A DNA stretch of 64,000 bases from Selaginella moellendorffii (Eukaryota > Plantae > Lycopodiophyta): the NCBI RefSeq assembly GCF_000143415.4, contig NW_003314313.1, positions 895,430 to 959,429 of the forward strand, read 5' to 3'. The translations under genes were made by a program, and so were the position numbers. The notes under the pieces were generated by a model, which had not been told where the DNA came from, did not search any database, and saw only the letters and a list, made by a program, of their open reading frames with translations. Shown one piece after another: positions 5,331 to 61,872 of this stretch. Positions within the stretch are counted from its first letter, which is position 1; each line of letters begins with the position of its first letter.

Positions 5331-6642
5331 ACAAGCCGATACAAAGTTAGGTTCAGGGAAAAACGAAAACTCTCGATCTCTCAGGGAAAAACGAAAAGAT
5401 GAGCAAGACTAAAGATGGAACGAAAACTGACCCTTTTGGTGAGCTTTCTGGAAAGCCCCAGCGTGAAGACGCAAACTCATTGCCACTGCGTGCTCCGCAT
5501 AAGTTTTCCAATGCTCTCCTTCAAGCTGCTTCCTGTTGTTCCAAAGTTCGCCAGTGGAATGATATTGGTGGCAAAAATCCTCTCCACTGGTTTCTGTCCC
5601 ACCGATCCAAACAAGATCCCCAAGGAAAACAAGAAGAGAAAAAAGCATTGAGAACGATTCATCAAATCAAGCAAAAGACGAGAATCACACACTACCTCGT
5701 AAATGCCGGGCCTTGTTCATGTATTTGGTGTGGTTCATCCTCGCCCGTCTCCGCGGCTGTCTCAAATCTCCTCGTCATGATCCCTTCCAGTTTGGTGCAA
5801 TGAGCGAGCCCAGAAACTGTAGCTCTGCTTCTGGCGCCCAAGAATCTAGCAGCTAGATGGCAAACCTCGATTCCGGAGCGCGCGCCATAGCTGCTCTTTT
5901 AGGGCTCTTCGCGAGGTGGATATTCCACAGATAATTTTGAGATTTCCCGCCCTGCCAGAAAGCCCTAAAATATAAAAACGTTTAAGAAGGTTTATACGGA
6001 CGCAAGCGCACTCAAGGCGATCCTTCTGCTTTGCAGCAGTGATTCTTTCTCTGCTGCAATCCTGTGTGAGTGGTGGTAGTACACTGGCGCGTTCTTCAGG
6101 TGGTGACGTGATCGCGGCATTATTGAGCGTGACAAAGGTGTGTTCTGCTTGATCTTTGATTTCTGGCCCCCCTCTCGCTGCTTAAACTCTGTCCGAGCCA
6201 GGTTCATTGATCGCGTCGCGGGGCGAGTCACTAGTGCCACTACTGCGCTCAAGCGGGTCCTTGGAGCTCGGCTCCCACGGCTTGTACTCGGCCCCTCGGT
6301 TCCTCTTCCGTGGAGATCCTTCGCAAGACCTTTCATACCTTTAGTGCCGTGGGAGTTTTTTATTCAGTCATGCGAAGCACAAGCACGCAACCACTTCCGA
6401 GGTACTTCTTTTCTTCTTTGCTTGCTTTTCTCTGCCTTTAGCTTCTTGTTGTCGTTGTTGTTAACTTACACTGCTCGTGGATTCGGTCGTTGTAGTGCTA
6501 CAGCTGTTTTCCAGATTTTACTGCTTGCATAGAAGTGGGATCTTTCTTTTGTCTTTCTGATTTAATTTCTCGATATCGATCATACTTCTTGTTGAAACTA
6601 TAGTCATCTGTGTTGGTTTCTACGGATCTGAAAACTCAGAAG

Positions 6643-8463
6643 ATGTTGAGCTCTAAGTTTTCTGTCCCAATGCTGCCTCTTGCTGCTGCGTTGCTCCTTT
6701 GGGTTCTCGCGACTAATGCCGTGCTTGCAGCTCCCCTTTCTCCAGTTCGCTGCGATGTTGCGACGGGGGCGTGCATGGTTTTCAACGCATATGGAACTTG
6801 GCCGGACAGGAGCTTTTGCAAGGTAGGGGAAGAAGCGTTCCCCTCCACGGAGCAGGAGCTGGTTGATATAGTCGCACATGGTGTGAAGAACAGGATGAAG
6901 ATGAAGGTTGTGAGTAATTCAGCTCACAGCTTTCCCAAGTTCGCGTGTCCTGGAGGGACTTCTGGCCTTGTAATCAGCACGGCAAAATACTCCAGCAGGG
7001 TAGTGATAAACGCGAGCTCCATGACTGTAACGGCAGACAGTGGTGTAGAGCTCTCAAGACTTTTACAGGAGATCGGAAGTCATGGCCTGGCTCTTCCTTC
7101 GTCGCCTTATTGGAACGGGATTTCGCTGGGAGGGCTGTTAAGCACAGGGTCTCATGGAAGCTCCTTGATGGGGAAAGGAAGTGCTGTCCACGAGTATGTG
7201 AAAGCGATGACGATGGTCGTTCCAGCCACAGAGCAGGAAGGGTTTGCGAAAATTGTCAAGATCACTGACCAGGACGAAGACTTTATGAATGCTGCCAAGG
7301 TCTCACTCGGAGTTCTGGGGGTGATATCACAGGTGACTTTGTCACTGCAGCCGATATTCAAGAGATCAGTGACAAAGTTTGAGGCATCCGACGTAAATCT
7401 GGAGAAAGAGATTCTAGAGTTTGGGAAGAACCACGAGTTTGGAGACGTCTCCTGGTATCCATCGAAGTACAAAGTCATCTACAGAGCAGACGACCGTGTT
7501 CCTGTGAGTACCAGCGGAGACGGTGTGAACGATTTCACTGGATTTCAACCGACGCTTGCCACTGCAGTTGAAGCTCAAAGAATTCTAGGTACGTACTGTT
7601 TCTGTTTGATCAAACAGTAGCGACTCAATGTTCTTTTCTTTACAGAGGAAGGTTTCGAGATATCAGGTGACCACACTGGGAAGTGTGCCACTGGATTGGT
7701 GCAAACTCAAGCACTTTTCGCTACAGGGGAAGGCTTCAAGAGCTCAGGTGGAGTTTTCACTGGCTACCCGGTCGTTGGTTTCCAGCACAAGATCCAGTCC
7801 TCTGGCGGCTGCCAAGCCTCACTCTCTCAACAACTCGTCTGTCCATGGGATCCCACAGTGAGAGGCCTGTTTTACCATCAGACCACCGTCTCCATATCGG
7901 TGGACAAGATCCAGGAATTCATTACCGACGTCAAGACACTTCGAGCTCTAAATCCCGCCGCTCTGTGTGGAGTGGACCTCTACAATGGCTTCCTCATGCG
8001 CTATGTCCGAGCTTCATCTGCATATCTGGGAAAGCAATCCGACGCAGTGGACGTGGACATAACTTACTACCGAGCTCGCAGTGGAAACACTCCCAGGCTG
8101 AACGAGGACGTCCTGGAAGAGGTGGAACAGATGGCTTTGTTCAAGTATGGAGGTCTCCCGCACTGGGGGAAGAACAGGAACATCGCGTTTGGGACTCACA
8201 CGGCTGCCAAATATCCCAAGCTGCAAAAGTTCCTGGTGGTGAAGAGCAAGTTTGATCCGGATGGTTTCTTCTCGAGCGAGTGGTCCGATTTTGCGCTTGG
8301 AATCTCTGGTGGAAGTAGTAATCTTCCACACTGTGCTCTCGAGGGTGAGTGTGTTTGCTCGCTCGACTCTCACTGTGCTCCCGAGAACTATTACTTTTGT
8401 AGGCCAGGGAGAGTTTACACGGATGCGCAGGTTTGCCGCTTTGTCCCGCCTGGGACCGCCTGA
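6643..8463 (+). CDS. L-gulonolactone oxidase-like FAD oxidoreductase (GulLO), secreted; intron 7589-7645
   Basis: Signal peptide, NAYGTWPDRSFC, HSFPKFACP, GLLSTGSHGSS, GLPHWGKNRN, Cys-rich C-terminus CALEGECVCSLDSHCAP; GT-AG intron joins ORFs 6610 and 7696. Confidence 0.92.
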
Positions 8464-32943: not shown

Positions 32944-33876
32944 ATGGCAGATCAGCAATCTCCTCCTTTGACTCTCGAGCAGCAGTTGGTCCAGTTGCTT
33001 GATGCTATGCGCTTGCAATTGAACAACCAAACTCAATTGATGGCGGCATTCACGGCACGTGGTCCAACTCCTCCTGCTCTTGGTGCCAATCCTCACGTTT
33101 GGCCGGAGTTCTTTCGTGGGAATCCTGGGGATGATGTGTACCATTGGTTTAATCACTTTACGGTGATTGCCACATACCATTCTTGGGATGATGCTCGACG
33201 GTTGCGTGAGTTTCCCACGTGTCTCCAAGGGACGGCGTTGCAGTGGTACAATGGTTTGAGCGCAGCCACTCGTGGGGATTGGAGTGTTCTCCCGGACGTC
33301 TTCAAACGCGCCTTCGGACATGCCGATGATTGTGATGATGCTTTCCAACAATTGCATCGTCTTCGCCAAGGGCCATCTGAGTCGGTGATGCAATTTGGCG
33401 TTCGTTTCCGAAGTCTTTTGCTTCGTGCGGAGCCAACTATGTTGGAGCGGATCAAGCTAGGAATGTTGTGGCCAGCACTTCGTCAAGATCTTGTTGGACT
33501 TGTGCATGCCCTTGCTCCTGCCACCCTTGACGATGCTCTTCGCTTGGCACAACGTTATGAGACGTCGCCTCTTCCACTTCTCGCTGCACGTCCTTCTGCT
33601 CCACTTCCTATGGGTGATGGTCCTATTCCAATGGAGGTTGATGCTGCTGCTGCTCGAGTCCAAGGACAAGCGCGAGGACGTGGTCGTGGTCGTGATGTTC
33701 GCTGCTGGGCATGTGATGAAGTTGGTCATACTTATCAGCGTTGCCATCGTTTTCCGGATTGGCGACCTCCATTTCCTGGGTGGAGACCTTGGCGTCAGCA
33801 ACGTCCCGTGGGTGCTACTGCAGTGGAAGGTCTGGACACCGAGGTGCATCTGGGAAACGAGGAGTTGCGCGAGTAA
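32944..33876 (+). CDS. gag: Retrotransposon Gag with CCHC zinc knuckle
   Basis: PEFFRG, LQGTALQWY, LRQGPSESV, CWACDEVGHTYQRC. Confidence 0.9.
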   Translation: MADQQSPPLTLEQQLVQLLDAMRLQLNNQTQLMAAFTARGPTPPALGANPHVWPEFFRGNPGDDVYHWFNHFTVIATYHSWDDARRLREFPTCLQGTALQWYNGLSAATRGDWSVLPDVFKRAFGHADDCDDAFQQLHRLRQGPSESVMQFGVRFRSLLLRAEPTMLERIKLGMLWPALRQDLVGLVHALAPATLDDALRLAQRYETSPLPLLAARPSAPLPMGDGPIPMEVDAAAARVQGQARGRGRGRDVRCWACDEVGHTYQRCHRFPDWRPPFPGWRPWRQQRPVGATAVEGLDTEVHLGNEELRE

Positions 33877-33913
33877 CGGAGGGATCTTGCGCGAATAAGT
33901 TAGTGACCCCTCC
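33852..33913 (+). promoter_or_regulatory. -1 programmed ribosomal frameshift signal (G GGA AAC + H-type pseudoknot)
   Basis: Slippery heptamer in gag frame, 6-nt spacer, stem 33865-73/33886-94, loop GGAGGG pairs with CCCTCC 33908-13; pol is in the -1 frame. Confidence 0.8.
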
Positions 33914-36900
33914 ATCTTTCTTTCGGGAGTATCATCAAGGGGTTCACTCGGCATCGGTTCATCTAGTGTTTACTTTCCAAGCTCGTTTTTATAACAAGAG
34001 GTCTCCTATTATTCTCTCTATGTTGGTTGATACAGGTTCGAGTTTATCTTCTATTGCTCGACCTGTTGCCACACGTTGTCGTTTACACTTGCGTCGTGCG
34101 GCGGAACCAGTTTTCATTCTTTATGGCAACGGCCGTACGCATGCATGTGCACGGGATGAGGTGGATCTGGTTGTGCGTGTGGGCGATCTCGAGCTTGAGT
34201 TGCAGTCGTTGCGGGTGGTGCCGAGTCAAGCTTTTGACCTCATTCTTGGTATGGATTGGTTGCAGCGCAATCATGCCAAGTGTGACTTTGAGGCTTCTCC
34301 CCCTTGTCTCATACTTCCTTATGTTTCATCCATTCCTTTCACTTCCATACCTCTTCGTCCCTCTACTTCTACCTTTGCTTTCATTACTTTTGTTCCCCCA
34401 CTCTTTCCTTTTGTGTTTCCATCTTGTTCTGCTTTTCCCTTTTCCGATCCCTCCGACGATCTTTGTGTTGCAGCAGTTGACCGGCTCATGAAGGAGTATT
34501 CTGATCTCTTTGAATTTGACTTATCGTCTGGGGCCAAGATTGCCACACGTCATCCGATTCCAACCGGGGATGCTCGTCCAATCAAGGTTCCTGTTCATCG
34601 TCAGTCACCTAAGGAGATCAAGATTTTATGAGCAAACGTCAAGGAAATGCTAGAGAAGGGTGTTATTCGGAAGTCGCGGAGTCCTTGGGCATGTGAACCT
34701 CATCTTGTGACGAAGCCTGATGGGAGTATTCGTTTCTGCATCGATTATCGTCCGTTAAATGAAGTAACGATCCCAGATGTGTATCCTCTTCCTCACACTA
34801 CTGATCTCTTGGATCGTCTGGGGCGAAGTCGTTGGTTCACCAAGCTAGATCTTGCTTCTGGGTATTGGCAAGTACCGATGGCCGAAGAAGATATTCCTAA
34901 GACTGCTTTTCGTACACCATTTGGTTTGTACGAGTTCTTGGTGATGCCGTTTGGTTTGAACAATGCTCTAGCAACTTTCCAGCGGATGATGGACGAGGTT
35001 CTTTGCGATATGCCGGAGGTGACTGCTAACTTCATTGATGATGTCTTGATCCACTCGGAGGGGACGTGGGAGGAGCACGTTCGTGATGTTTGTAAAGTGT
35101 TGGATCGGCTACGCGACGTTGGTTTAAAGCTGAAGCGGTCAAAGTGCGTGTTTGGGTCCAAGGACACAACTTATCTTGGGTACCGTATTTCTCGTGAGGG
35201 TTTGCAAGTTGATCCTGACAAACTTGTGGCTGTTCTAAAGTTCCCTACTCCGAAGAGTGTGAATGATATGCAACGCTTTTTGGGTAAGGTGCAGTATCTC
35301 GGTCGTTTTGTGGATCATCTTTCCGATCGCACTACACCATTGCGAGCGTTGCTAAAGTCATCGACGTCATCTTTCATCTGGTCTCCGGATTGTGAGCGAG
35401 CGTTCGTGGATCTCAAAGAACTATTGACGACTCCTCCGGTTTTGGCATATCCTGACTACACTCGACCTTTTATTTTGCGCGTGGATGCTTCTGACATTGG
35501 TCTTGGAGGTGTGTTGATGCAAGAAAGCTCGAGTGTGCCGGGTTAGCGCCATCCCATTGCATACATCAGCCGTACATTACAACCAGTGGAGATGAACTAC
35601 TCCACGACGGAGAAGGAGTGTTTAGTAGCAGTCTGGGGTTTCGAGAAATTTCATGCCTATCTACATGGTTCTCGGACGTTACTTGAAGGTGACCATGCTG
35701 CTGTTACTTCATTATTGAAGCGGAAGAACCTGGTTGGTCGTACGGCTCGGTGGGCTTTGAAGTTTCAGATATATGATTTCGATGTTGTTCATCGCCCAGG
35801 GAGTTCTATGGCTGATGCTGATGCCCTTTCTCGAGCTCCTCTTCCTTCTCCACTCACTTCTCATATTTCTGACGAACCTGTTGTTCCAGCATCTGTGGAT
35901 TTTTTAGATGAGGATTCTGTGCCGTTGGCGGTTGCTATCCTTGACGTTCAGTGTCCACAAGGTGCAGAGCAAGATCTACCTTCTCTTGATGAGGTTCGCG
36001 AGGCTCAAAAGATTGAGCCGTGGATTCGGAGGCTTCGAGATGGGTTTGAGAATCCTACATCACTTGCTGATGACTTCCCTTTCCGGCATTTACATTCTCA
36101 ATATCGCCTTGACGATGGCCTTCTTTATTTTGTGGGGACAGATCCTGATGATCATTTACGGCTGGTGGTGCCTTCGGTGTTTATTCCGCGGTTTTTCCAT
36201 GCCTACCATGATTCTCCTGTTCTAGGTGGGCATATGGGACACCGTCGTGTCACCGAGAAGCTGCGCAGGTCTTTCTATTGGCCAGAGATGCGACGTGATA
36301 TTATCCGGTATGTGCGTAGCTGCGTTTGGTGCCAAGCTCGTAATACTTCCCCTCGTGTTGCGGAAGGACGGTTGGAGTCAATTGCGGTTTCCCGTCCGTT
36401 TGAGTTGGTGGCATTTGATCTTATGGGACCTTTTCCACGGTCAACTGCTGGCAATGAGTATGTTATTATTGCTTCTAACTACTTGACTCGTTGGGTGGAA
36501 GTTGGTGCTCTTGCTAGTGCCTCTGCAACTGCTGTTGGATACTTCCTCCTCAATCGAGTGGTGTTCCAGCATTCTTGTCCAGAGCGGATTCTTTCAGATA
36601 ATGGTCCCGCATTTATGGCTGAGGCATTTCATGTTTTGACATCTCGGTTGGGGATATGCCACACTTTCACGAGTGCTTATCATCCACAATCAGACGGTCT
36701 GGTGGAACGGCTTGTTCGGACATTCAAAGGGATGATTGCGAAGTATGTGAACTTTCAGCATTCGGATTGGGATGGTTATTTGCCGTCTCTTCGGTATGCA
36801 TATGTTACAGGGGTGCAGAGTTCTGTTGGTGCTTCACCATATAAACTTTTATATGGTCATGATCCAATATTACCAATGGAGCTGGGTTTACCTTCGCGAT

Positions 36901-37340
36901 TGCCACGTGCTGCTGATGCTAGATCATGGGATCAGTATTTGACGAGCATTCTTCCACTTGTCCAAGTAGAGTCTGCCGAACACTTAGGCCGCGTACAAGT
37001 GGGACAACAACGGCGCTATAACTCTCATCATCGTCTACCTGCGGAGTACAAAGTGGATGATTTGGTGTTAGTCCGTTTTCCCCATCTTACGGTACGTGGT
37101 TTATCTAAGGGGCTTCTTGCGCAATGGAAAGGACCGTATCAAGTGTTGCGACAAATTGGACCACAAGTTTATGAGGTTCGGCATGACATTCAGCAAGCCG
37201 ATCCTCCAGAGATTGTGCATGTGCAGCGGCTAAAACGTTTCGTACAAAGGGATCAAAAGGAGTTAATACCACCTCCAGATCCACCGATGCCTCCTCCTAA
37301 TGTTCCTTCGGATCCCGGCCCATCCTCAAGAGAACCCTGA
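33858..37340 (+). pseudogene. pol: Pol (protease, RT, RNase H, integrase) with two in-frame stops
   Basis: LVDTGS; RFCIDYR, LDLASGYWQ, FIDDV; VDAS; HHCC, SDNG, DGLVER, KGPY; stops at 34629-31 (TGA) and 35544-46 (TAG). Confidence 0.92.
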
Positions 37341-51920: not shown

Positions 51921-53521
51921 TTAGCTCAAAGCTTTGAGATCTTCCAAGAATGCTTGGAGGCCACGAAACGATTTCCCATGCTCTTTGTCCATAGCTTTTC
52001 TTGCAAGGATCTTCAAGTTCTCCACTCTCTCCTTCATCTCCTTCCCCTCGTCGCTATCCATCACCTTTTTTATGCCATCTTCGATCTCTTCTCGCCCGAT
52101 CAATCCCTGCACCACTGTCTTGGAGAATCTAACCCCGATCTTCCAGTCCTCCACGACGAACTTCGAGTTGGTGATTTGATCGCCCCCGTAAGGCCACCCC
52201 AGCATTGGAATGCCATTCGCTATGCTCTCCTGGACAGAATTCCATCCGCAGTGAGTGAGAAACGCTCCCATGGAGGGATGGGCGAGAACTCTCAGCTGTG
52301 GCGCCCAGGAAACGATGAATCCCTGGTTCTTGGTCCTCTCGTAAAATCCATTGTAAGATTCGGTGGAGAGTCCGCCGGCGACGAGCTCGGATCGAATCAC
52401 CCACAAGAATGGCTTCTTTGATGCCTCGAGAGCTCCCACGAGCTCCTCGAATTGCTCCATGCTCAGCACCGCGATGCTGCCAAACGAGATGTAGAGCACC
52501 GATCCATGCTCCTGCGCATCCATCCAGCGAAGGCAATCCTCATTCTCGGGGCGAAGCACCACATTCTTCCTGGAATCGTCGAGCAAGAACAGTGGCCCCG
52601 CGGGGATGAATCGAGGTCCCAGCTCACTGGTCATGAAATCGAAGGTGTGTGCCTCGAGGTCGTAGAAGGAATTGACGAGGACCCATCGCGCGCGCTTCAC
52701 GACTGGAGAGCGCTTGATGCAAATCTCCTTCCACACCTCCTGGCCCTCCGAGGCCAGCAGGTAACCAGGCAGATCGGCCAGGCGGAGAGGCTTGACTCCT
52801 CGGACATAATCGATGATCACGGAATTGGCCTCGTCCGCGGAAGCTCTCCCTGCATGCGAATTTCAGAAATTTGAACAGAGGAAAGGAAAGAACAGAGGAA
52901 TGTTAATTCCAAAGGAGGGGAAATTTGAAGGTCCAAGGGAAGAACAGGGTAAATCCGAGGGAATAATAGGGGAAACGTTCAATGCCAAGGGAAGAACAGG
53001 GAAGAACGGAGATTCGTACCTCTGCTAGATAAAATGTGATCTTTCTCCAGAAGCTCTGGAATGTGATACTCCAAGCTCGTCCATGCCGCGTTGCCCGACC
53101 AAAGAATGATCCTGGGGATTCCAAACACATCCGCCACATCCTGGGTCCAAACGCAACCGTAATCCGAGACGATACAGCTGACCGGATCGCCCTCCTCGCC
53201 GAGCTTGCGGATCAAATCCTCGAGGCCTCCGGGGAGCTCTCGCGCAGCTGCCGTGGCGTAGTCGGCATAATTTCCCATAGTATGGGCATCGGCTCCTTGG
53301 GGGAGCTTCCACGAGAATGGGATGGAATGGAGGCGCAGATCTTCCAGCCCCGCCGGCGCCACCCAGTGCTTGATGAATTCGTCGTGGAGGCTGTCGATAT
53401 TGACCAAGGAGATTGTGAAGCTTGGATCTTGAGCGATGAACTTGCAGAGATGGATCATTGGGGAGATATGGCCTTGCGCGGCCGCTGGAACCGCCAAGAC
53501 ATGGACCTTGCTGGAAGCCAT
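51921..53521 (-). CDS. UDP-glycosyltransferase (family 1); intron 52850-53019
   Basis: Catalytic QGHISP, SCIVSD, PSPG box WAPQLRVLAHPSMGAFLTHCGWNSVQESIANGIPMLGWPYGGDQ. Confidence 0.93.
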
Positions 53522-53772: not shown

Positions 53773-54071
53773 GAAGCTCGGTCTTTAGAACATCTCCTTG
53801 AATGATCTACAAGCATCGAAGAAAAATCAATCATAAAATCGATTTGACACACGATTTGCTTGGAAGTGCTTTGGACGCGCCTCTGCAGCACCTCTTGGCG
53901 ACCTCGAGCAGCTTGACGGTGAGATTTCCAGTTCCCGGCCCAATCTCCAGGACAATGCTGCACGATCGACTGGACAATGAGAGGATTCTTGAGGATGTGC
54001 TGGCCCCGCAACTTGTAGAACTGGATTCCGCCCTGGAACTGGAAGCGCTGCTTGCCGGACATTCTCCCTCT
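53773..54071 (-). pseudogene. Truncated, internally deleted 5' copy of DIM1A
   Basis: Near-identical to 44326-44750, including the intron, with deletions and a frameshift. Confidence 0.88.
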
Positions 54072-54198: not shown

Positions 54199-54619
54199 AT
54201 GGCGAAGAGTGAGAGTAGCCCAGCTCCAAAGAGGAAGTTTTTGCAAAGGGACTACAAGAAGGGACCTTTCTTCCAGTCGGACAATGAGCCGATCTACAAG
54301 AGGGACTTTTCAGAGCCGACTGGTGAGGACAAGCTGGATAAGAAGTTATTGCCCAAGGTGATGCAAGTCAAGGGTTTTGGCCGGCGTGGCCGCGTCAAGT
54401 GGACGCATCTCGTCAACGAGGACACAAGCCGATGGGACGCACCGTAAGTTTTAGTTTTTCTCCTTTTCGTTTCTTTTGTTTTCTTACCATGCTTCTTTCA
54501 GGTGGAGCTCGAATAACGAGTTTCGTGCCCAGTATGACAAGAAGATGGACAAGCCGATCGAGAGGCCCCGGGGCAGCAAAAAGATGAAGACGAGCGTTCA
54601 AGACTTGTACGAAGTGTAA
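54199..54619 (+). CDS. Stand-alone MFAP1 C-terminal domain mini-protein (120 aa), intron 54444-54501
   Basis: [72 protein letters not shown]. Confidence 0.75.
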
Positions 54620-54948
54620 CAAGCAGTCGTCTCAAAGGGTAAAAACGCTTTCCCTGTATTTACATATCAGTTATTGAACTGAGAGAAATTCAAGACTCAC
54701 CTTGATTGAAAATGGGAACCAAAAAGGCAAGAAATTTAGAACATCGATTTTTTCTCAAGAGCTACCTGTTCCATCATAAAAACAAACCAATCCTGTTGCA
54801 TAAAGAAGGGAAAGAACACCACAAATTACCTTGCGACGCTCGGATGCCTTCACAAAAACAGGACGTATTTCTTCCTCGGTTTCTGCTTCACTCGAGCTTG
54901 GAGTAGGATCGCTAGGATGATTTTCAGCCCACGGTTTCTGCAGCACAT

Positions 54949-55755
54949 TCAATAGCTCGTGTAGATGACTTCTTCATCTAGCTCCATGTTGCCCACGGAA
55001 AACCCACAGCCGGGAAGATCAAAGCACCGAATTTGTTTCGCTAGCGGTTGAAGTTCTTCTTGGACTTCGGCAGCTGTAGATTGAGAGATACCGTCACAGA
55101 AACTGAAAACGTCGCAACCTCCCCCTACTTCTGGGTGACCCTTTCCAGAGGCAATGATGCTTTCTATGAGGAGCTTGACCACTTCGATGTAATCGCCTGT
55201 CGAACGAATCTCTGCCTTGAGTTTATTCCGAGAACGAGCCAGGTGCCATGCTGCTGCCTCTCCTCCACACCCAGCGTACACTAGAGTAGGTTCAACAGGT
55301 CCCTTTATCAATTTCATCCCCTTGTTGGATCCAAACCCTGTTATGCACCTGATTCCCAGGGGCCCCATGACGATCGTCTGCACTCTAAAATTTTCTGGAT
55401 CTTCATCTGATTTTGCAAGAGCTTTTCCCATCGATGTTCCAAGAACTGCCTCGGCCTCGTCGATAGACCCATATACTTCTCGAAACAGCCCAAGAGCCTC
55501 ATCATACGAACATGATATCTGCATAAAGTCGCCTGAAGAAGCAGCGATAGTCTTGGGTCCGACCCAGCAGAGCTTCACAAACCCCCCAGCCGGACGGTTG
55601 TTTTCAGTGACAACAAGTCGGTCGGCGCATACAAAAACACTTTTTCCCACTTCAAGTGCAGTAGAAGAACGTTCCTGTCCGGAAAAAAATAAATAAATAA
55701 ACTTCGCAGAAGAAGCAGTTCTTACCTTGGAGCAATATACAGCCACGGGGACCAT
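54949..55755 (-). CDS. Diverged proteasome beta-subunit-like (Ntn-fold) domain; intron 55675-55725; in frame with upstream transporter exon
   Basis: D17, K33, G47 at canonical beta-subunit spacing, YAGCGG (GSG-like) and VGGGCDV (SGG-like) motifs. Confidence 0.55.
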   Translation of the reverse strand: MVPVAVYCSKVRTASSAKFIYLFFSGQERSSTALEVGKSVFVCADRLVVTENNRPAGGFVKLCWVGPKTIAASSGDFMQISCSYDEALGLFREVYGSIDEAEAVLGTSMGKALAKSDEDPENFRVQTIVMGPLGIRCITGFGSNKGMKLIKGPVEPTLVYAGCGGEAAAWHLARSRNKLKAEIRSTGDYIEVVKLLIESIIASGKGHPEVGGGCDVFSFCDGISQSTAAEVQEELQPLAKQIRCFDLPGCGFSVGNMELDEEVIYTSY

Positions 55756-57466
55756 CCGAAATTGCTTGTCAAGTGATCGAGCAGCTCTCAACCAAGCTAA
55801 CATGATAACCAACAGCACCATGCAAACGTAGGGAGTTGAAAGTGGTCCTAACATCAAGACCAGGGCAGCTCCCAATGGATTGCAAATAATGTCAACGATA
55901 GCTTTGCTTTTCACCTGAAAATGGAAATAGAAACACAAATATTATCCAGACAATTAGGACCAAGTTACCTTTGTATCTTCGTCAAGAGGGATGTGAGTCA
56001 TTTCTTTGCAAGGATCAAAGAGGCTGTACTTTGCGTTTTTCTTGACTATATGTTGCACAATCCCAACGTAAACAGCTACTGTCACTCCAATACCTCTGAC
56101 GAATGGAGTTTCTGAACCATTGGATAACGCCAGCGATAAAAAGGTGATTCCAGGTATCACGATTGATATAATAGCAGCCAAAACACCCCATCCGAAATTG
56201 TTGAAGATTAGCCTGCTCAGCAACGTCATACTTAAACTCATGATTCCAATCCAGGTCGAAAAATCTTCCAGGAATGTTGAGTTTGGAAGCTGTGGTAATA
56301 GAGTATAAGCGATATAACTATCATAACCACCTCACTATCCCACGTGAGATTCGCTGAGGTTGATACTAATTTCGTAGGCAATGACGAGTGTTGCAAGATC
56401 CAGGATATATCTCGACTTGACCAACAGCTTTACACTCTCACCCACGCTCGTTGTAGCCTTGATCTGCTAGAATGGTCCAGCATTAGCAAAATGCTCCCTA
56501 CAGAACTTTGAAACTGCCTTACCTTTTTCTTCCTAGGAAGATTGCGATCGTTAACAACATAAGCGTTCATCCACCAGTATATGGTACATATGGTGAAGCC
56601 AAGCATCACAACGATGCTCATCATTCCCTTGAGAGAGAACCCCCAACCATCAATGTCGGGTCCAAGGCGTCCTCGTAACTCAGCAAAGAACTTGACAGTT
56701 CGTTCTGCGAAAACAAGCGCTACGTTGGCTGCCAACCCGAACAAGGGATAAAACCGCTTTGCTTCATCCAGAGAGGTGATCTGGAAACGAAGAAAGAAAA
56801 CAAATCAGGACAGAGAAGAAACAAACGGCGTCTTACCTGGTTCGCGAATCCCCAGAAGAGGACTGATACAACGACGCTTCCCCATAACTCGGCCATGACG
56901 TAGAAAAGCACGAACGCCCAGTTGCGAAAGAGAGCAATCGGCCCCGAGAGAAGATCGTCCGCGAGAGCAGTCGTGTGGAGAATGCCTCGTAAAGGATATA
57001 GGACGAAGGCAAAACTCCCGAAAATCCCGACAAATGAAAGGACGCAAGCGTAGAAGAGAGCTTCCCTGGACAAAACGTTGGAGAGCTTGGTGTAGACGAC
57101 CGTGAAGCCGATAGCCACGGGGAGATTCACCCAGGTCTTGAGGAAAGGGATGATCTCGGCGTTGCTTCCCTTGGCCGCCACCACCAAAGCGTCCTTGGTG
57201 TCTCGCAGGACGCCATAGGCGAAGAGGATGCAGAAGAACATCAGGCACAGAGCTATAATCTTCTTCCTCTCCCCCCGGGGCACCGATGCCTCCGCCTTCC
57301 GGACCCCAGATTTCTCGGATGAAGCATGCGATCCTGAGCTGTGGAGGATGGATTTGGCGCTCGACGACGTGACTGTAACCCTGGGAGAGCATCGGATCGA
57401 AGGAGAGGCCTCATTCTTGCAAGAATACAGCGCGGCGCCGCGCGGTGGGGACGACGACGACAGCAT
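55756..57466 (-). CDS. Plastid ATP/ADP transporter (NTT/TLC family), degenerate, multi-exon
   Basis: LMFFCILF.Y.VLRDTKD, AEIIPFLKTWVNLP, FYVMAELWGSVVVSVLFWGFANQ, AKYSLFDPCKEM.HIPLDEDTK; deletions and a probable frameshift near 56345. Confidence 0.8.
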
Positions 57467-57686
57467 CGCGAGTGATATTTCGACCTGGATCGAGCAAAGG
57501 AGCCATCAGCTCACGAATCCATAGCAAGATCGATCCATCCGATCGCATTACCGTGAGAATGCGGGATCTACATCCGGCACGCCGGCAGCGACGATGCTCC
57601 TCGACCTAAAACTATCTCAGGGTTTTGGGGCCCTTTAAAATTTGGGGGGAAAGCTCAACTTTTGAAGGGTTTTGTTTTAGGGCAAG

Positions 57687-58367
57687 ATGGCGATAGATTT
57701 GGAGGAGGTCCGGGAGTGGCAACGCAAGCTCAGTAGAGCGGAAGCCTTTGTCAAGGTAATGGTCTTGACTATCTTCTTACTGGGCTCTGATTGAAATCTT
57801 GGACAGGAGAGTAAAGAGTTGTTTCCCAGGACCAAATTGATCCCAGACTACTGCCTCGTAAACCTAATCGCGGACAAGATGGAGCAATCGAGGCAAAGGT
57901 TAATGGCTTATTGGGATCCAAAGGATCCAAACAAGAAACTGGATGATGCCGAGTATGTGTTTCCTTTCTTTCTTTTGCTTTCTTCCTTGACAGTTTCTCT
58001 TGCAGACTGATTCGTAAACTTGGCTTTCTCTCGGGAATGTAAGTACTTTCGTTTTTTGCTTTGCTGTCGTGCTTCATATCCGTCTGTAGGAAGGAGGAGG
58101 TTGACCTTGCGATATCTACAAACAACCAAGAGAGGCTTTTTGGCCTTATCTTGCGACTCTTAACTCGTCAATCTTCGCCCATTCTCGGCATCGATGTGAA
58201 GGAATTGGATACAGCTTCTGCCCTGTAAGACTCATCTCTTGTTTCAATTTTTAGATCCTTTCTTAACATGGTGAGCCAGGGAAAGTGAGTTCCAAAGGGC
58301 CAGGGAAAATGGCTACGAAGGCGTGCTCATCCAAGCACTCTGCACGGCGATGTCTTACCCCGGGTAA
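57687..58367 (+). CDS. Unknown small protein, 5 predicted exons (~160 aa)
   Basis: MAIDLEEVREWQRK... joined through four GT-AG introns in consistent phase to ...TAMSYPG*. Confidence 0.55.
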
Positions 58368-59437
58368 ACATCGTACTGAAACCTGTTTATGGCAGACACT
58401 GGGAGCTGAAATAGTGTGGAGAGCAATCCTGCTTCATGGTATGTTTGATCTTAAAAAATGATTAGCAGGTCGTGGTGGACAAACTTGTTCGAAGTAGATG
58501 AGATCTAGAAACAATGCAAAGATTATGAAATGTCTCCTTGAAATTTAAACAGGACAAAGAACTATTCCATTAAGTCTCTCATCGGCCAACAGGATATACT
58601 CCGAATCTTATTCTCGCATTCTCTTGATATTTTATAATTTTCTTCCCGATACCGAGACGCATTTTCAACTCAAATGCCTTGATTACTTCAAGTTCTTTGA
58701 CTCGCTCGTGAGTGACGATGCGTTTCTCGAGCAAACTCTTATAATGCATATCCTGGACATGAGAAGATTTTATAATATCCCTCCAAAATATAAGTTTATG
58801 AACAATATCCCTTACGCCCTAACCCAATATGACTTGGTTTTCAGGCTAGTTCATATCAGAGTGCATTTATTTGGACCATCGGATTTTTTTTTTTTTTCAT
58901 AGCAACCAGGATCTTTTAAGCTCAATTTCCCAAAAACACTCTTTATAAGAAAGCCTGTTCTCCTTGTGCTTGATCTAATTTACTTTCTGGTATAGAAGTA
59001 GCAGCAGCATATTTTCTTTAGGACTGTATCAGTTTGAAAAAACAAAAATGTAAAAAGAAAAGTCAGGAGAGCTCTAGGAACTTTCCTTGTGGTACTAATC
59101 GTTAATTGGCAAGTAGCTTGAGGGTCGAGCAATGAAGGATCATCCAAAATGCAACCATTATAAACTAGAGCCATTTAGATCTTATAGAAACTGTGAATTC
59201 TGACTTGGATCACAATACGCTACTGTGGTAAATCCTTCGCCATGCATGGGCGAGCCTCGCTCCAAAACCAAACGTTCGAAATGCATTCCCGCCAATCTGA
59301 GGCCATATGTTTTACCGTCATACAGATGACTCTAGTATGACTTTTAATTTATAACTATAAGGATTATAAAAGAGGTTTGTCGTACACAGAAAAAGTGCGT
59401 ATTGCAGAGATTGATAACATTTCAGATATCTTTTGTA

Positions 59438-59898: not shown

Positions 59899-61872
59899 TC
59901 AAGAACCCTCATTTTCATATCTACACACCCTTGCAGCTGTGAAAACTCTCCCTGGCCGACAGTGGTAACTCTTCTCCGGTGCGCAATGCTCGTCTCTCGA
60001 GCAAATGCACAGACCCTCCAATGCACACCCAGGATTTTTCTGCTCCTCCATAGCTTTGATCCCGAGAATGCGATCGCTCCAGCGGGTGGAGAAGAGTCCA
60101 CTGGGATCCATATTCCTCATCTCTTTCACAAATCTCTCGAGCCTTAGAGATCTGCCAGTCCCAGGATTCGAGAAGGTGACCGGTGTGTTTTTCCCCCAGT
60201 GAGGAACGCCTCCGTACTTAGAAATGGCCATTTGTTCCACCTCTTGCCACACGTCCATGTTGAGCCGCGGCATGCTCCCATTTCGTGACCGGTAGTACGT
60301 AAACCCCAGATCCACTCCGTCGAATGGCTTGCCGAGCAACGCCCGGGATGCGGCCACGTAGCGCAAGAGGACGCCGGTGTAGAGGTCGATCCCACACAAC
60401 GCCCCGGCATCTGGGTGGGAATCTCTCAGATGCTTCACGTCCGCGATGAAGGCCGCGATGCTCTGGGCTGGGATTGTGATGCCGGATTCGAGGTAGAAGA
60501 GCGCATGCTTGGCGGAATCCCAGCCACAGATAAGCAGCCGCGATGTGGATTCCTGGCAGCCACCGGCGGTTTGGATTTTGTGCTGGAATCCCACCACTGG
60601 GTAGCCCGTGAAGAGCCGCAGGCCATGTGTGTTCTTGAGGCCGTAGCCCAGGCTTTCGAGCAGCGATACCTGTGCCTGTGACGCGATGCACTTGCCATTG
60701 GACGATCGCTTCGCCTCCAGCGTCTCCTCTGTCCGGATCGATGGAGCATTAGCGTGGGTTCTTGGCTAGGATTCTTACCGAGAGCTCTTTGGGCGACGAT
60801 GGCAAGCGCCAATGTGGGCTGAAAGCCAACGAATTCGTTGATTCCATTGCCGGGCGTGTTGGCGGGAACGCGATCGTCGATCCGGTAGACGGCCTCTCGC
60901 TTGGATGGGTACCAGGTCACGTCGCCGAATTCGTGCTCGTTCCCAAATGCCACGATCTTGTCTTCCAGCCCCGCGTCGGAGGTTCTCATGTTGGTGATCG
61001 ATCGCTTAAACATGGGCTCCAGCTCCAGCGTCACCTATAATGGATAGAATTGATCGATCGCGAAGATGCCACTGCCAGATCTAGAAGAAAACCGAGAGCT
61101 CGAGTGAGAAAAGACCTTTGAGATGACTCCCATCGTTCCAAGTGAGACGATCGCGGCATAGAAGAGATCGCCATCGCCGGGGGTGAGAGTGACGATCTTC
61201 GCAAACTCTTTGTGTGAGGAAGAGGAGGAGGAATTCTTCCCGGACGGTACCACCATGCGAAGTTTGAGGACGTGATCGTGGAGAGCTCCTCCTTTGCCAC
61301 GCCAGGAGCTCCCATGGGATCCAGTGCTGAGGATCCCAGCGACGGAGAGGCCATTCCAGTAGGGAGACGCGGCCAGTGCCAGGCCGTGCCGCGCGGCCTC
61401 GTCGAGCACCGCCTGGAGCTGCGCGCCACCATCCACTTCCACGGCCTTGGAATTCACGTCCACGGCAATCCCGCGGCTGTAGTCGGCGGTGCTAATGGCG
61501 AGGAGGCCAGCGGCGCCGCTATGACCGCCACCATCGCCATCTCCTGGGCATGCCAGCGGAGGAATGCTGTGACTAAACTTGGTCACGGCTTTCATCTTGA
61601 GCTTGTTCTTGGCTCCATAGCTCACTGCTTCCAGGAGCTCCTCCTCGTTGGATGGATACACGATCTGGGAAACCTTGCAAACCTTTTGGATCGAATCGAT
61701 CATGAGAGTGGTTTTTTTGGAGAAGCGATGAATTTACCTGTCTGGTGTTCCATGTCCCATACGAATTGGTGATGAAACAATCTCCAGAGGCGTCGCAAAA
61801 TACTGGATCCGGAGGAAACGCGTCAGCCAGCAGCAGCAGCGTAGCAAGAACAAGGGGGAGCAACATTCTCAT
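59899..61872 (-). CDS. Second L-gulonolactone oxidase-like FAD oxidoreductase; introns 61683-61737, 61035-61115, 60729-60778
   Basis: Signal peptide, NSYGTW, SHSIPPLACP, GILSTGSHGSS, GVPHWGKN, CALEGLCICSRDEHCAP. Confidence 0.92.

Follow-up and report, generated by a model that had tools for sequence, protein, structure and literature searches.

A spliced RNA of Selaginella moellendorffii joins NTT-family transporter exons to a putative, very diverged proteasome-beta-like exon

The window analyzed here is a stretch of 64,000 nucleotides (nt) from Selaginella moellendorffii (NCBI RefSeq assembly GCF_000143415.4, contig NW_003314313.1, positions 895,430 to 959,429 of the forward strand), and it consists of plant-like nuclear DNA with short introns. 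Its minus strand carries a single transcription unit, from 57579 to about 54650 in window coordinates, whose first four exons code for a TLC/NTT-family nucleotide transporter and whose fifth exon holds an open reading frame (ORF) of 241 codons, called the domain ORF below. A single spliced RNA from the minus strand carries both the transporter part and the domain part, and the fusion is thus genuine as far as RNA is concerned. The domain is supported as a very diverged proteasome-beta-like protein with Arg at the nucleophile position. As to how the two came together, we consider it moderately probable that the unit is a low-expressed, decaying duplicate of a plastid NTT gene, the last coding exon of which has become spliced onto an inactive, lineage-specific proteasome-like module. 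The features of the unit are summarized in Table 1.

An earlier reading, made from the letters of the DNA and hereafter called the sequence-only reading, had noticed that the last NTT exon has no stop codon and continues in frame, across a 51-nt GT-AG intron, into the domain. Both the sequence and the spliced RNA contigs bear this out. The ORF listing contains a 329-residue open frame at 54949-55938 on the minus strand, the first 60 residues of which correspond to the final part of the TLC profile (PF03219, positions 429-491) as well as to residues 429-491 of AtNTT1 (PDB 9j3j). After ..AARSLDKQF this frame reads on without a stop into RMVPVAVYCSK, where it meets an intron that begins with GT at 55725-55724 and ends with AG at 55676-55675. 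Exon 5 opens with GAA CGT, encoding Glu and Arg, and goes on with S S T A L E V G K.

RNA from two runs of one study (X1 and X3) was kept as contigs, which are spliced and therefore RNA-derived. Record 7 of X3 (1989 nt) reaches from 57319 to 55125 and holds all five exons in one contig, with four introns removed (56836-56781, 56522-56464, 55968-55915 and 55725-55675, each CT..AC on the plus strand and hence GT-AG on the minus strand). Whether the NTT exons and the domain exon lie on one transcript, a check that the sequence-only reading had proposed, is settled by this contig, which spans both. Record 6 of X3 continues from 55141 past the stop codon and across two further minus-strand introns, and X1 has the same joints as X3 or loose ends that match them. 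At the other end, the contigs extend upstream of the NTT start codon to 57579 (record 4 of X1 spans 56837-57579). Raw stranded reads from a second study (X9 and X10) give thin cover of the whole unit. All of them lie on the sense side, and the first mate maps to the plus strand in every case, which is the reverse of what is seen over the strongly expressed plus-strand neighbor (57600-58400) and what one expects of minus-strand RNA.

Contig depth is alike over the NTT exons and the domain exon, at about 11 (11.1 in X3; 11.8 versus 10.3 in X1), and is more than 10-fold below that of the neighboring gene (150-190). These depths bear on a different explanation, in which the domain is a gene in its own right that lies behind a dead NTT gene and starts from an internal transcript, either at ATG 55755, which sits 10 codons before the intron, or at ATG 56241, which opens a 395-codon frame. 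Such a gene is hard to reconcile with equal depth over both parts, with a single contig that spans all exons, and with RNA data in which neither a pile-up of read starts nor an internal transcript start is seen. We regard it as very improbable, and the separate gene from ATG 55755 that had been suggested as one option is not upheld.

The domain ORF is far too long to have opened by chance. At this composition, 241 open codons have a probability of p = 2e-6, and none of 20,000 shuffles stays open. Counted from the Arg as position 1, residues D17, K33 and G47 are all present, in the Asp17/Lys33/Gly47 spacing of PF00227, which confirms the claim that they fall on canonical proteasome beta positions. 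The strength of this coincidence was measured in a fixed-register test, using the ungapped first 47 residues in the register set beforehand by the reader (Arg = 1). The test set consisted of 22 non-redundant sequences out of 88 actinobacterial 20S beta subunits, pulled from genome contigs by the pattern HGTTIVA, and a second set comprised 9 HslV sequences taken from records of E. coli and of plasmids. Against the 22 beta subunits the register scores 6.4, the best of 194 offsets (the next scores -10.1), and 8 of 20,000 shuffles reach it (p ~4e-4). With HslV (9 sequences) it is third among 197 offsets, and the score is reached by 52 of 5000 shuffles.

Language-model features point to the same family. 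In the ESM-Atlas, PF00227 "Proteasome" accounts for 25 of the 30 nearest clusters of the whole domain, with a score of 0.95 and 189-196 of 256 features in common. When the first 55 residues are removed and residues 56-241 are used, PF00227 still accounts for 19 of 30 (score 0.93), and no other named family appears. Further along the ORF, the sequence-only reading had taken YAGCGG and GHPEVGGGCDV for echoes of the GSG and RDxxSGG motifs. A block scan with the beta-subunit alignment finds them at the best or tied-best positions in the ORF for the GSG and helix-4/SGG blocks, in the expected order and with G-C-G and G-G-G on the motif positions; the scores themselves are at chance level, being reached by 533 of 1000 and 237 of 1000 shuffles, and neither block is significant alone. 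Low-confidence AlphaFold models predict four strands followed by two long helices, a pair of strands, a pair of helices and a strand after GGG, which is the order of elements in beta subunits.

The likeness to 20S beta subunits (PF00227, for example actinobacterial PrcB) lies in the ungapped first 47 residues with D17/K33/G47, the order of the GSG- and SGG-like blocks, the order of elements and the Atlas neighbors; the register test, the colinear blocks, the element order and those neighbors are the basis on which we call the domain proteasome-beta-like, and they make a proteasome-like fold likely. The differences are considerable. There is no similarity at the level of hidden Markov models (HMMs), some 13 extra residues precede the SGG block, a C-terminal tail of about 50 residues follows, and the domain is the 3' exon of a transporter gene and not a stand-alone subunit. 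In the only scoring register, Arg occupies position 1 and Glu position -1, where beta subunits have Thr1 after Gly-1; the nearby Ser2, Ser3 and Thr4 are out of register. Cys stands in place of Ser129 and Gly in place of Ser169, and no Asp166 is evident. Given Arg at the nucleophile position and the replacement of both serines, this copy is most likely not a protease, being catalytically dead or decayed. The earlier description of a very diverged, probably non-catalytic beta-like family is borne out in part: the Atlas neighbors, the register test and the Arg at position 1 agree with it, while a match at fold level was not obtained from the AlphaFold models, which are unreliable.

The transporter part is readily recognized. 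Its exons match the TLC profile (PF03219) over the whole profile length, from position 4 to 491, in segments covering 4-173, 174-254, 266-303, 320-429 and 431-491; stretches that align, with gaps, to AtNTT1 are residues 271-301, 318-427 and 429-491, and the N-terminus resembles a transit peptide, as in NTT1. An upstream ORF of 45 codons lies in the 5' leader (57548-57414, minus strand) and, in a different frame, runs across the NTT start codon at 57466. Along the gene the Pfam score falls, from 205 bits over 163 residues in exon 1 to 18 bits over 51 residues in exon 4, where the 18.2 bits are under the cut-off of 21. Exon 4 misses 10 residues of a membrane helix, the last one, relative to AtNTT1, and the usual C-terminal tail and stop codon of NTT1 are replaced by the splice into the proteasome-like exon. 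Exon 3 (56463-55969), which in both contigs (record 4 of X1 and record 7 of X3) is an unspliced single piece with 0 differences from the genome, carries two stops that NTT1 does not have: the frame coming from exon 2 ends ..INLSESHVG at TAG TGA (56337-56332), 338 codons after ATG 57466. With these stops and the deletion in exon 4, the expressed RNA has no uninterrupted frame for all TLC membrane helices. The same frame reopens at 56331 and runs for 425 codons to 54952. Where the stops are, the canonical sequence is INLVEVTWKSK, and TWDSE, the counterpart of TWKSK, is present in the +1 frame, which suggests a one-base insertion together with a short stretch that was once an intron and now stays in the RNA.

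Beyond the stop codon of the domain ORF, two introns lie more than 100 nt in the 3' direction. Early stops combined with introns more than 100 nt past the stop make a textbook target of nonsense-mediated decay. By this general rule the RNA is likely to be such a target, and its low depth fits. The sequence-only reading had offered a full-length chimeric transporter-Ntn (N-terminal nucleophile) protein as its other option. The RNA form that is seen, with TAG TGA in frame in NTT exon 3, does not sustain that proposal, and the stops, the deletion in exon 4, the introns after the stop codon and the low expression make a full-length fusion protein from this RNA unlikely.

In the explanation that we favor, the last NTT coding exon would have lost its stop codon, and splicing across the 51-nt intron would have connected it to the domain exon. 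The acceptor of the domain exon would lie one codon before the mature N-terminus of the family (Thr1), so that the upstream gene would occupy the place of a propeptide. Initiation at the NTT start codon would yield only a truncated transporter of 338 residues. Neither the host part nor the domain would be functional in this copy, which would be a chimeric transcript on its way to becoming a pseudogene and not a working transporter-protease.

A number of results weigh against this explanation, most of them concerning the kinship of the domain. Pfam is blank for the whole domain ORF and for six pieces of it, with no match to PF00227 at E<=10, and NCBIfam is blank as well; phmmer against 1.84 billion representatives returns only four repeat-protein artefacts. 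An HMM of PrcB built from the 88 sequences gives the domain ORF -1.1 bits (--max, filters off), which 46 of 500 shuffles reach, and hhalign gives a probability of 0.33; with the HslV (9 sequences) and PrcB families alike, the domain ORF does no better than shuffles by HMM or hhalign. AlphaFold without an alignment reaches a pLDDT (predicted local distance difference test) of 42 for 241 residues and 39 for 197 residues. Foldseek searches of these models (pLDDT ~40) against the PDB, and VIA wide, return unrelated helical proteins that amount to noise, so the structural check that had been proposed produced no Ntn-fold match, from models that are themselves unreliable. By the Atlas tool's own calibration, shuffled proteins attain 0.95 at a rate of one in 100, and ten hits from a single family are obtained by a third of them. 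As for the decay of the transporter, the 425-codon frame after the stops is fully open, which fits very recent decay and also a minor isoform that removes the 54-nt segment around the stops; moreover, contigs drop rare variants, and the raw-read depth over 56288-56451 is zero.

Other searches with the 241-residue ORF were equally empty. The word-indexed search is blank at both E<=0.01 and E<=10, and blank again when the 329-residue ORF is used with only residues 90-190 considered; no relatives come up among PDB sequences, nor by tblastn in plasmids or in the window itself; and an exact-product look-up finds no record. One may ask, then, whether the ORF is simply a lineage-specific orphan with no kinship to proteasome subunits, its motifs and language-model neighbors being coincidental. 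Apart from the fixed-register test, the alignment-based tests are all at chance level and no confident structure was obtained, and the calibration of the Atlas leaves room for such a coincidence. It would have to explain, however, why PF00227, which the reader had named from motifs alone, is the sole named family in the feature search, and is so twice, the second time without the N-terminal motifs; why the register is the best of 194 offsets; and why three motif blocks stand in the expected order. We consider an orphan fairly unlikely.

The open frame past the stops lends itself to another interpretation, that of a working chimera. A minor or tissue-specific isoform would remove 56343-56290 and encode an envelope transporter of about 747 residues with a C-terminal proteasome-like domain serving as a non-catalytic module for binding or regulation. 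The segment keeps the frame, is bounded by GT and AG with a pyrimidine-rich acceptor, and is of a size typical for the introns of the gene (47-64 nt); for the 425 codons past the stops to be still open has a chance of ~1e-10, and the intron before the domain preserves the frame. However, the segment is retained in both spliced contigs while all other introns are gone, and none of the six donors in use (GTAAG, GTAAC or GTGAG) resembles its donor, GTGGGA. Its removal would cost about 12 residues relative to AtNTT1, and would leave a last NTT exon from which 10 membrane-helix residues are missing. With the two introns after the stop codon and the low expression added, a working chimera appears quite improbable, and we prefer the decaying duplicate.

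Ntn domains of the proteasome type are familiar as free-standing subunits of barrel-shaped proteases, and our literature search found no paper in which one forms the final exon of a membrane-transporter gene or of any other, unrelated gene of a plant. Among the prokaryotic homologues of the proteasome, HslV, Anbu, BPH and connectase are, like the domain, single-domain proteins of similar size, and the nearest Atlas clusters are prokaryotic, with lengths of 241-254 residues. D17 and K33 coincide with HslV, although the HslV profile gives no signal for the domain ORF. In contrast to these homologues, the domain belongs to a spliced nuclear plant gene and has neither a partner ATPase nor operon context. 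In real beta subunits, the sequence before Thr1 is removed by self-cleavage. The arrangement recalls ubiquitin fusions and beta-subunit propeptides in that the NTT host protein sits exactly at the place of the propeptide; it differs from them in having no Thr at the cleavage position, and self-cleavage of this copy is therefore not expected.

The same arrangement has led us to consider a broader possibility, which at present seems unlikely: the domain may represent a module that is specific to spikemosses, spreads as a 3'-terminal exon and has left one of its copies here. Intact copies would cleave themselves from the host protein, and the NTT locus would be a decayed insertion. Having its own acceptor one codon before the self-cleavage site, the module would be able to ride on the transcript of any upstream gene.

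Table 1. Features of the NTT-domain transcription unit (window coordinates; all on the minus strand)
Feature	Position	Strand	Remarks
NTT exon 1	56837..57466	-	From ATG 57466; putative transit peptide and TLC positions 4-173; PF03219 205 bits
Introns either side of NTT exon 2	56836-56781, 56522-56464	-	Both spliced
NTT exon 2	56523..56780	-	86 codons, TLC positions 174-254; Pfam 71.9 bits; joints 56780/56837 and 56463/56523 in X1 and X3 contigs
NTT exon 3, as in RNA contigs	55969..56463	-	Start similar to AtNTT1 271-301, end similar to AtNTT1 318-427; middle disrupted
In-frame stops TAG TGA in NTT exon 3	56332..56337	-	Local translation of spliced RNA, and sequence
54-nt in-frame GT(GGGA)..AG segment	56290..56343	-	Would remove both stops if spliced; kept in both RNA contigs, no joint
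NTT exon 4	55726..55914	-	AtNTT1 429-491 with 10-residue gap, then linker RMVPVAVYCSK; no stop codon
51-nt GT-AG intron, NTT to domain exon in frame	55675..55725	-	X3 record 7 has joint 55673/55725 (cut +1), X1 a loose end
Domain ORF, proteasome-beta-like	54952..55674	-	241 codons; stop TGA 54951-54949
3' untranslated exons with two spliced introns (54829-54766, 54700-54654)	54653..54948	-	X3 record 6 has joints 54762/54827 and 54652/54700, X1 a loose end

The 3' end of the NTT-domain unit overlaps the 3' end of a convergent plus-strand transcript. The latter belongs to a truncated MFAP1-like gene (54199-54652). Its ORF begins at ATG 54199 and corresponds to no more than the final 72 positions of PF06991. 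The gene is expressed, with a GT..AG intron spliced out at 54444-54501, and a single RNA contig runs the two units together. An origin of the 3' untranslated exons from the N-terminal part of the MFAP1 gene was considered and rejected, as it finds no Pfam support. Next to the MFAP1-like gene, at 53830-54060 on the minus strand, is a piece of an rRNA adenine dimethylase gene (DIM1-like, PF00398) whose frame is broken. It is matched only partly by RNA of a related copy located elsewhere, and that RNA has about 22 to 26 nt extra between 53957 and 53958; the piece looks like a pseudogene fragment.

Directly upstream of the NTT gene and divergent from it is the strongly expressed plus-strand gene mentioned above, which has three GT-AG introns of 51-55 nt. 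The genes flanking this region are a UDP-glycosyltransferase and an L-gulonolactone-oxidase-like gene (FAD_binding_4, ALO, GULLO2-like), at 51921-53521 and 59899-61703, both on the minus strand; a second FAD_binding_4 ORF is located at 6610-7620 on the plus strand. A Ty3/Gypsy-type retrotransposon pol region (RVT_1, RNase H and integrase) occupies 33700-37340 on the plus strand and adjoins a very AT-rich section at 31-33 kb with a GC content of 0.19-0.29. Transposon capture of the domain was also considered and set aside, since 50-62 kb contains no inverted or long direct repeats.

If the domain is what we take it to be, the locus shows a proteasome homologue that has drifted beyond the reach of profile methods and is still detected by a fixed-register test and by language-model features. 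Should the idea of a module spreading as a terminal exon prove true, it would represent a new route of expression for a selfish or recruited protein module.

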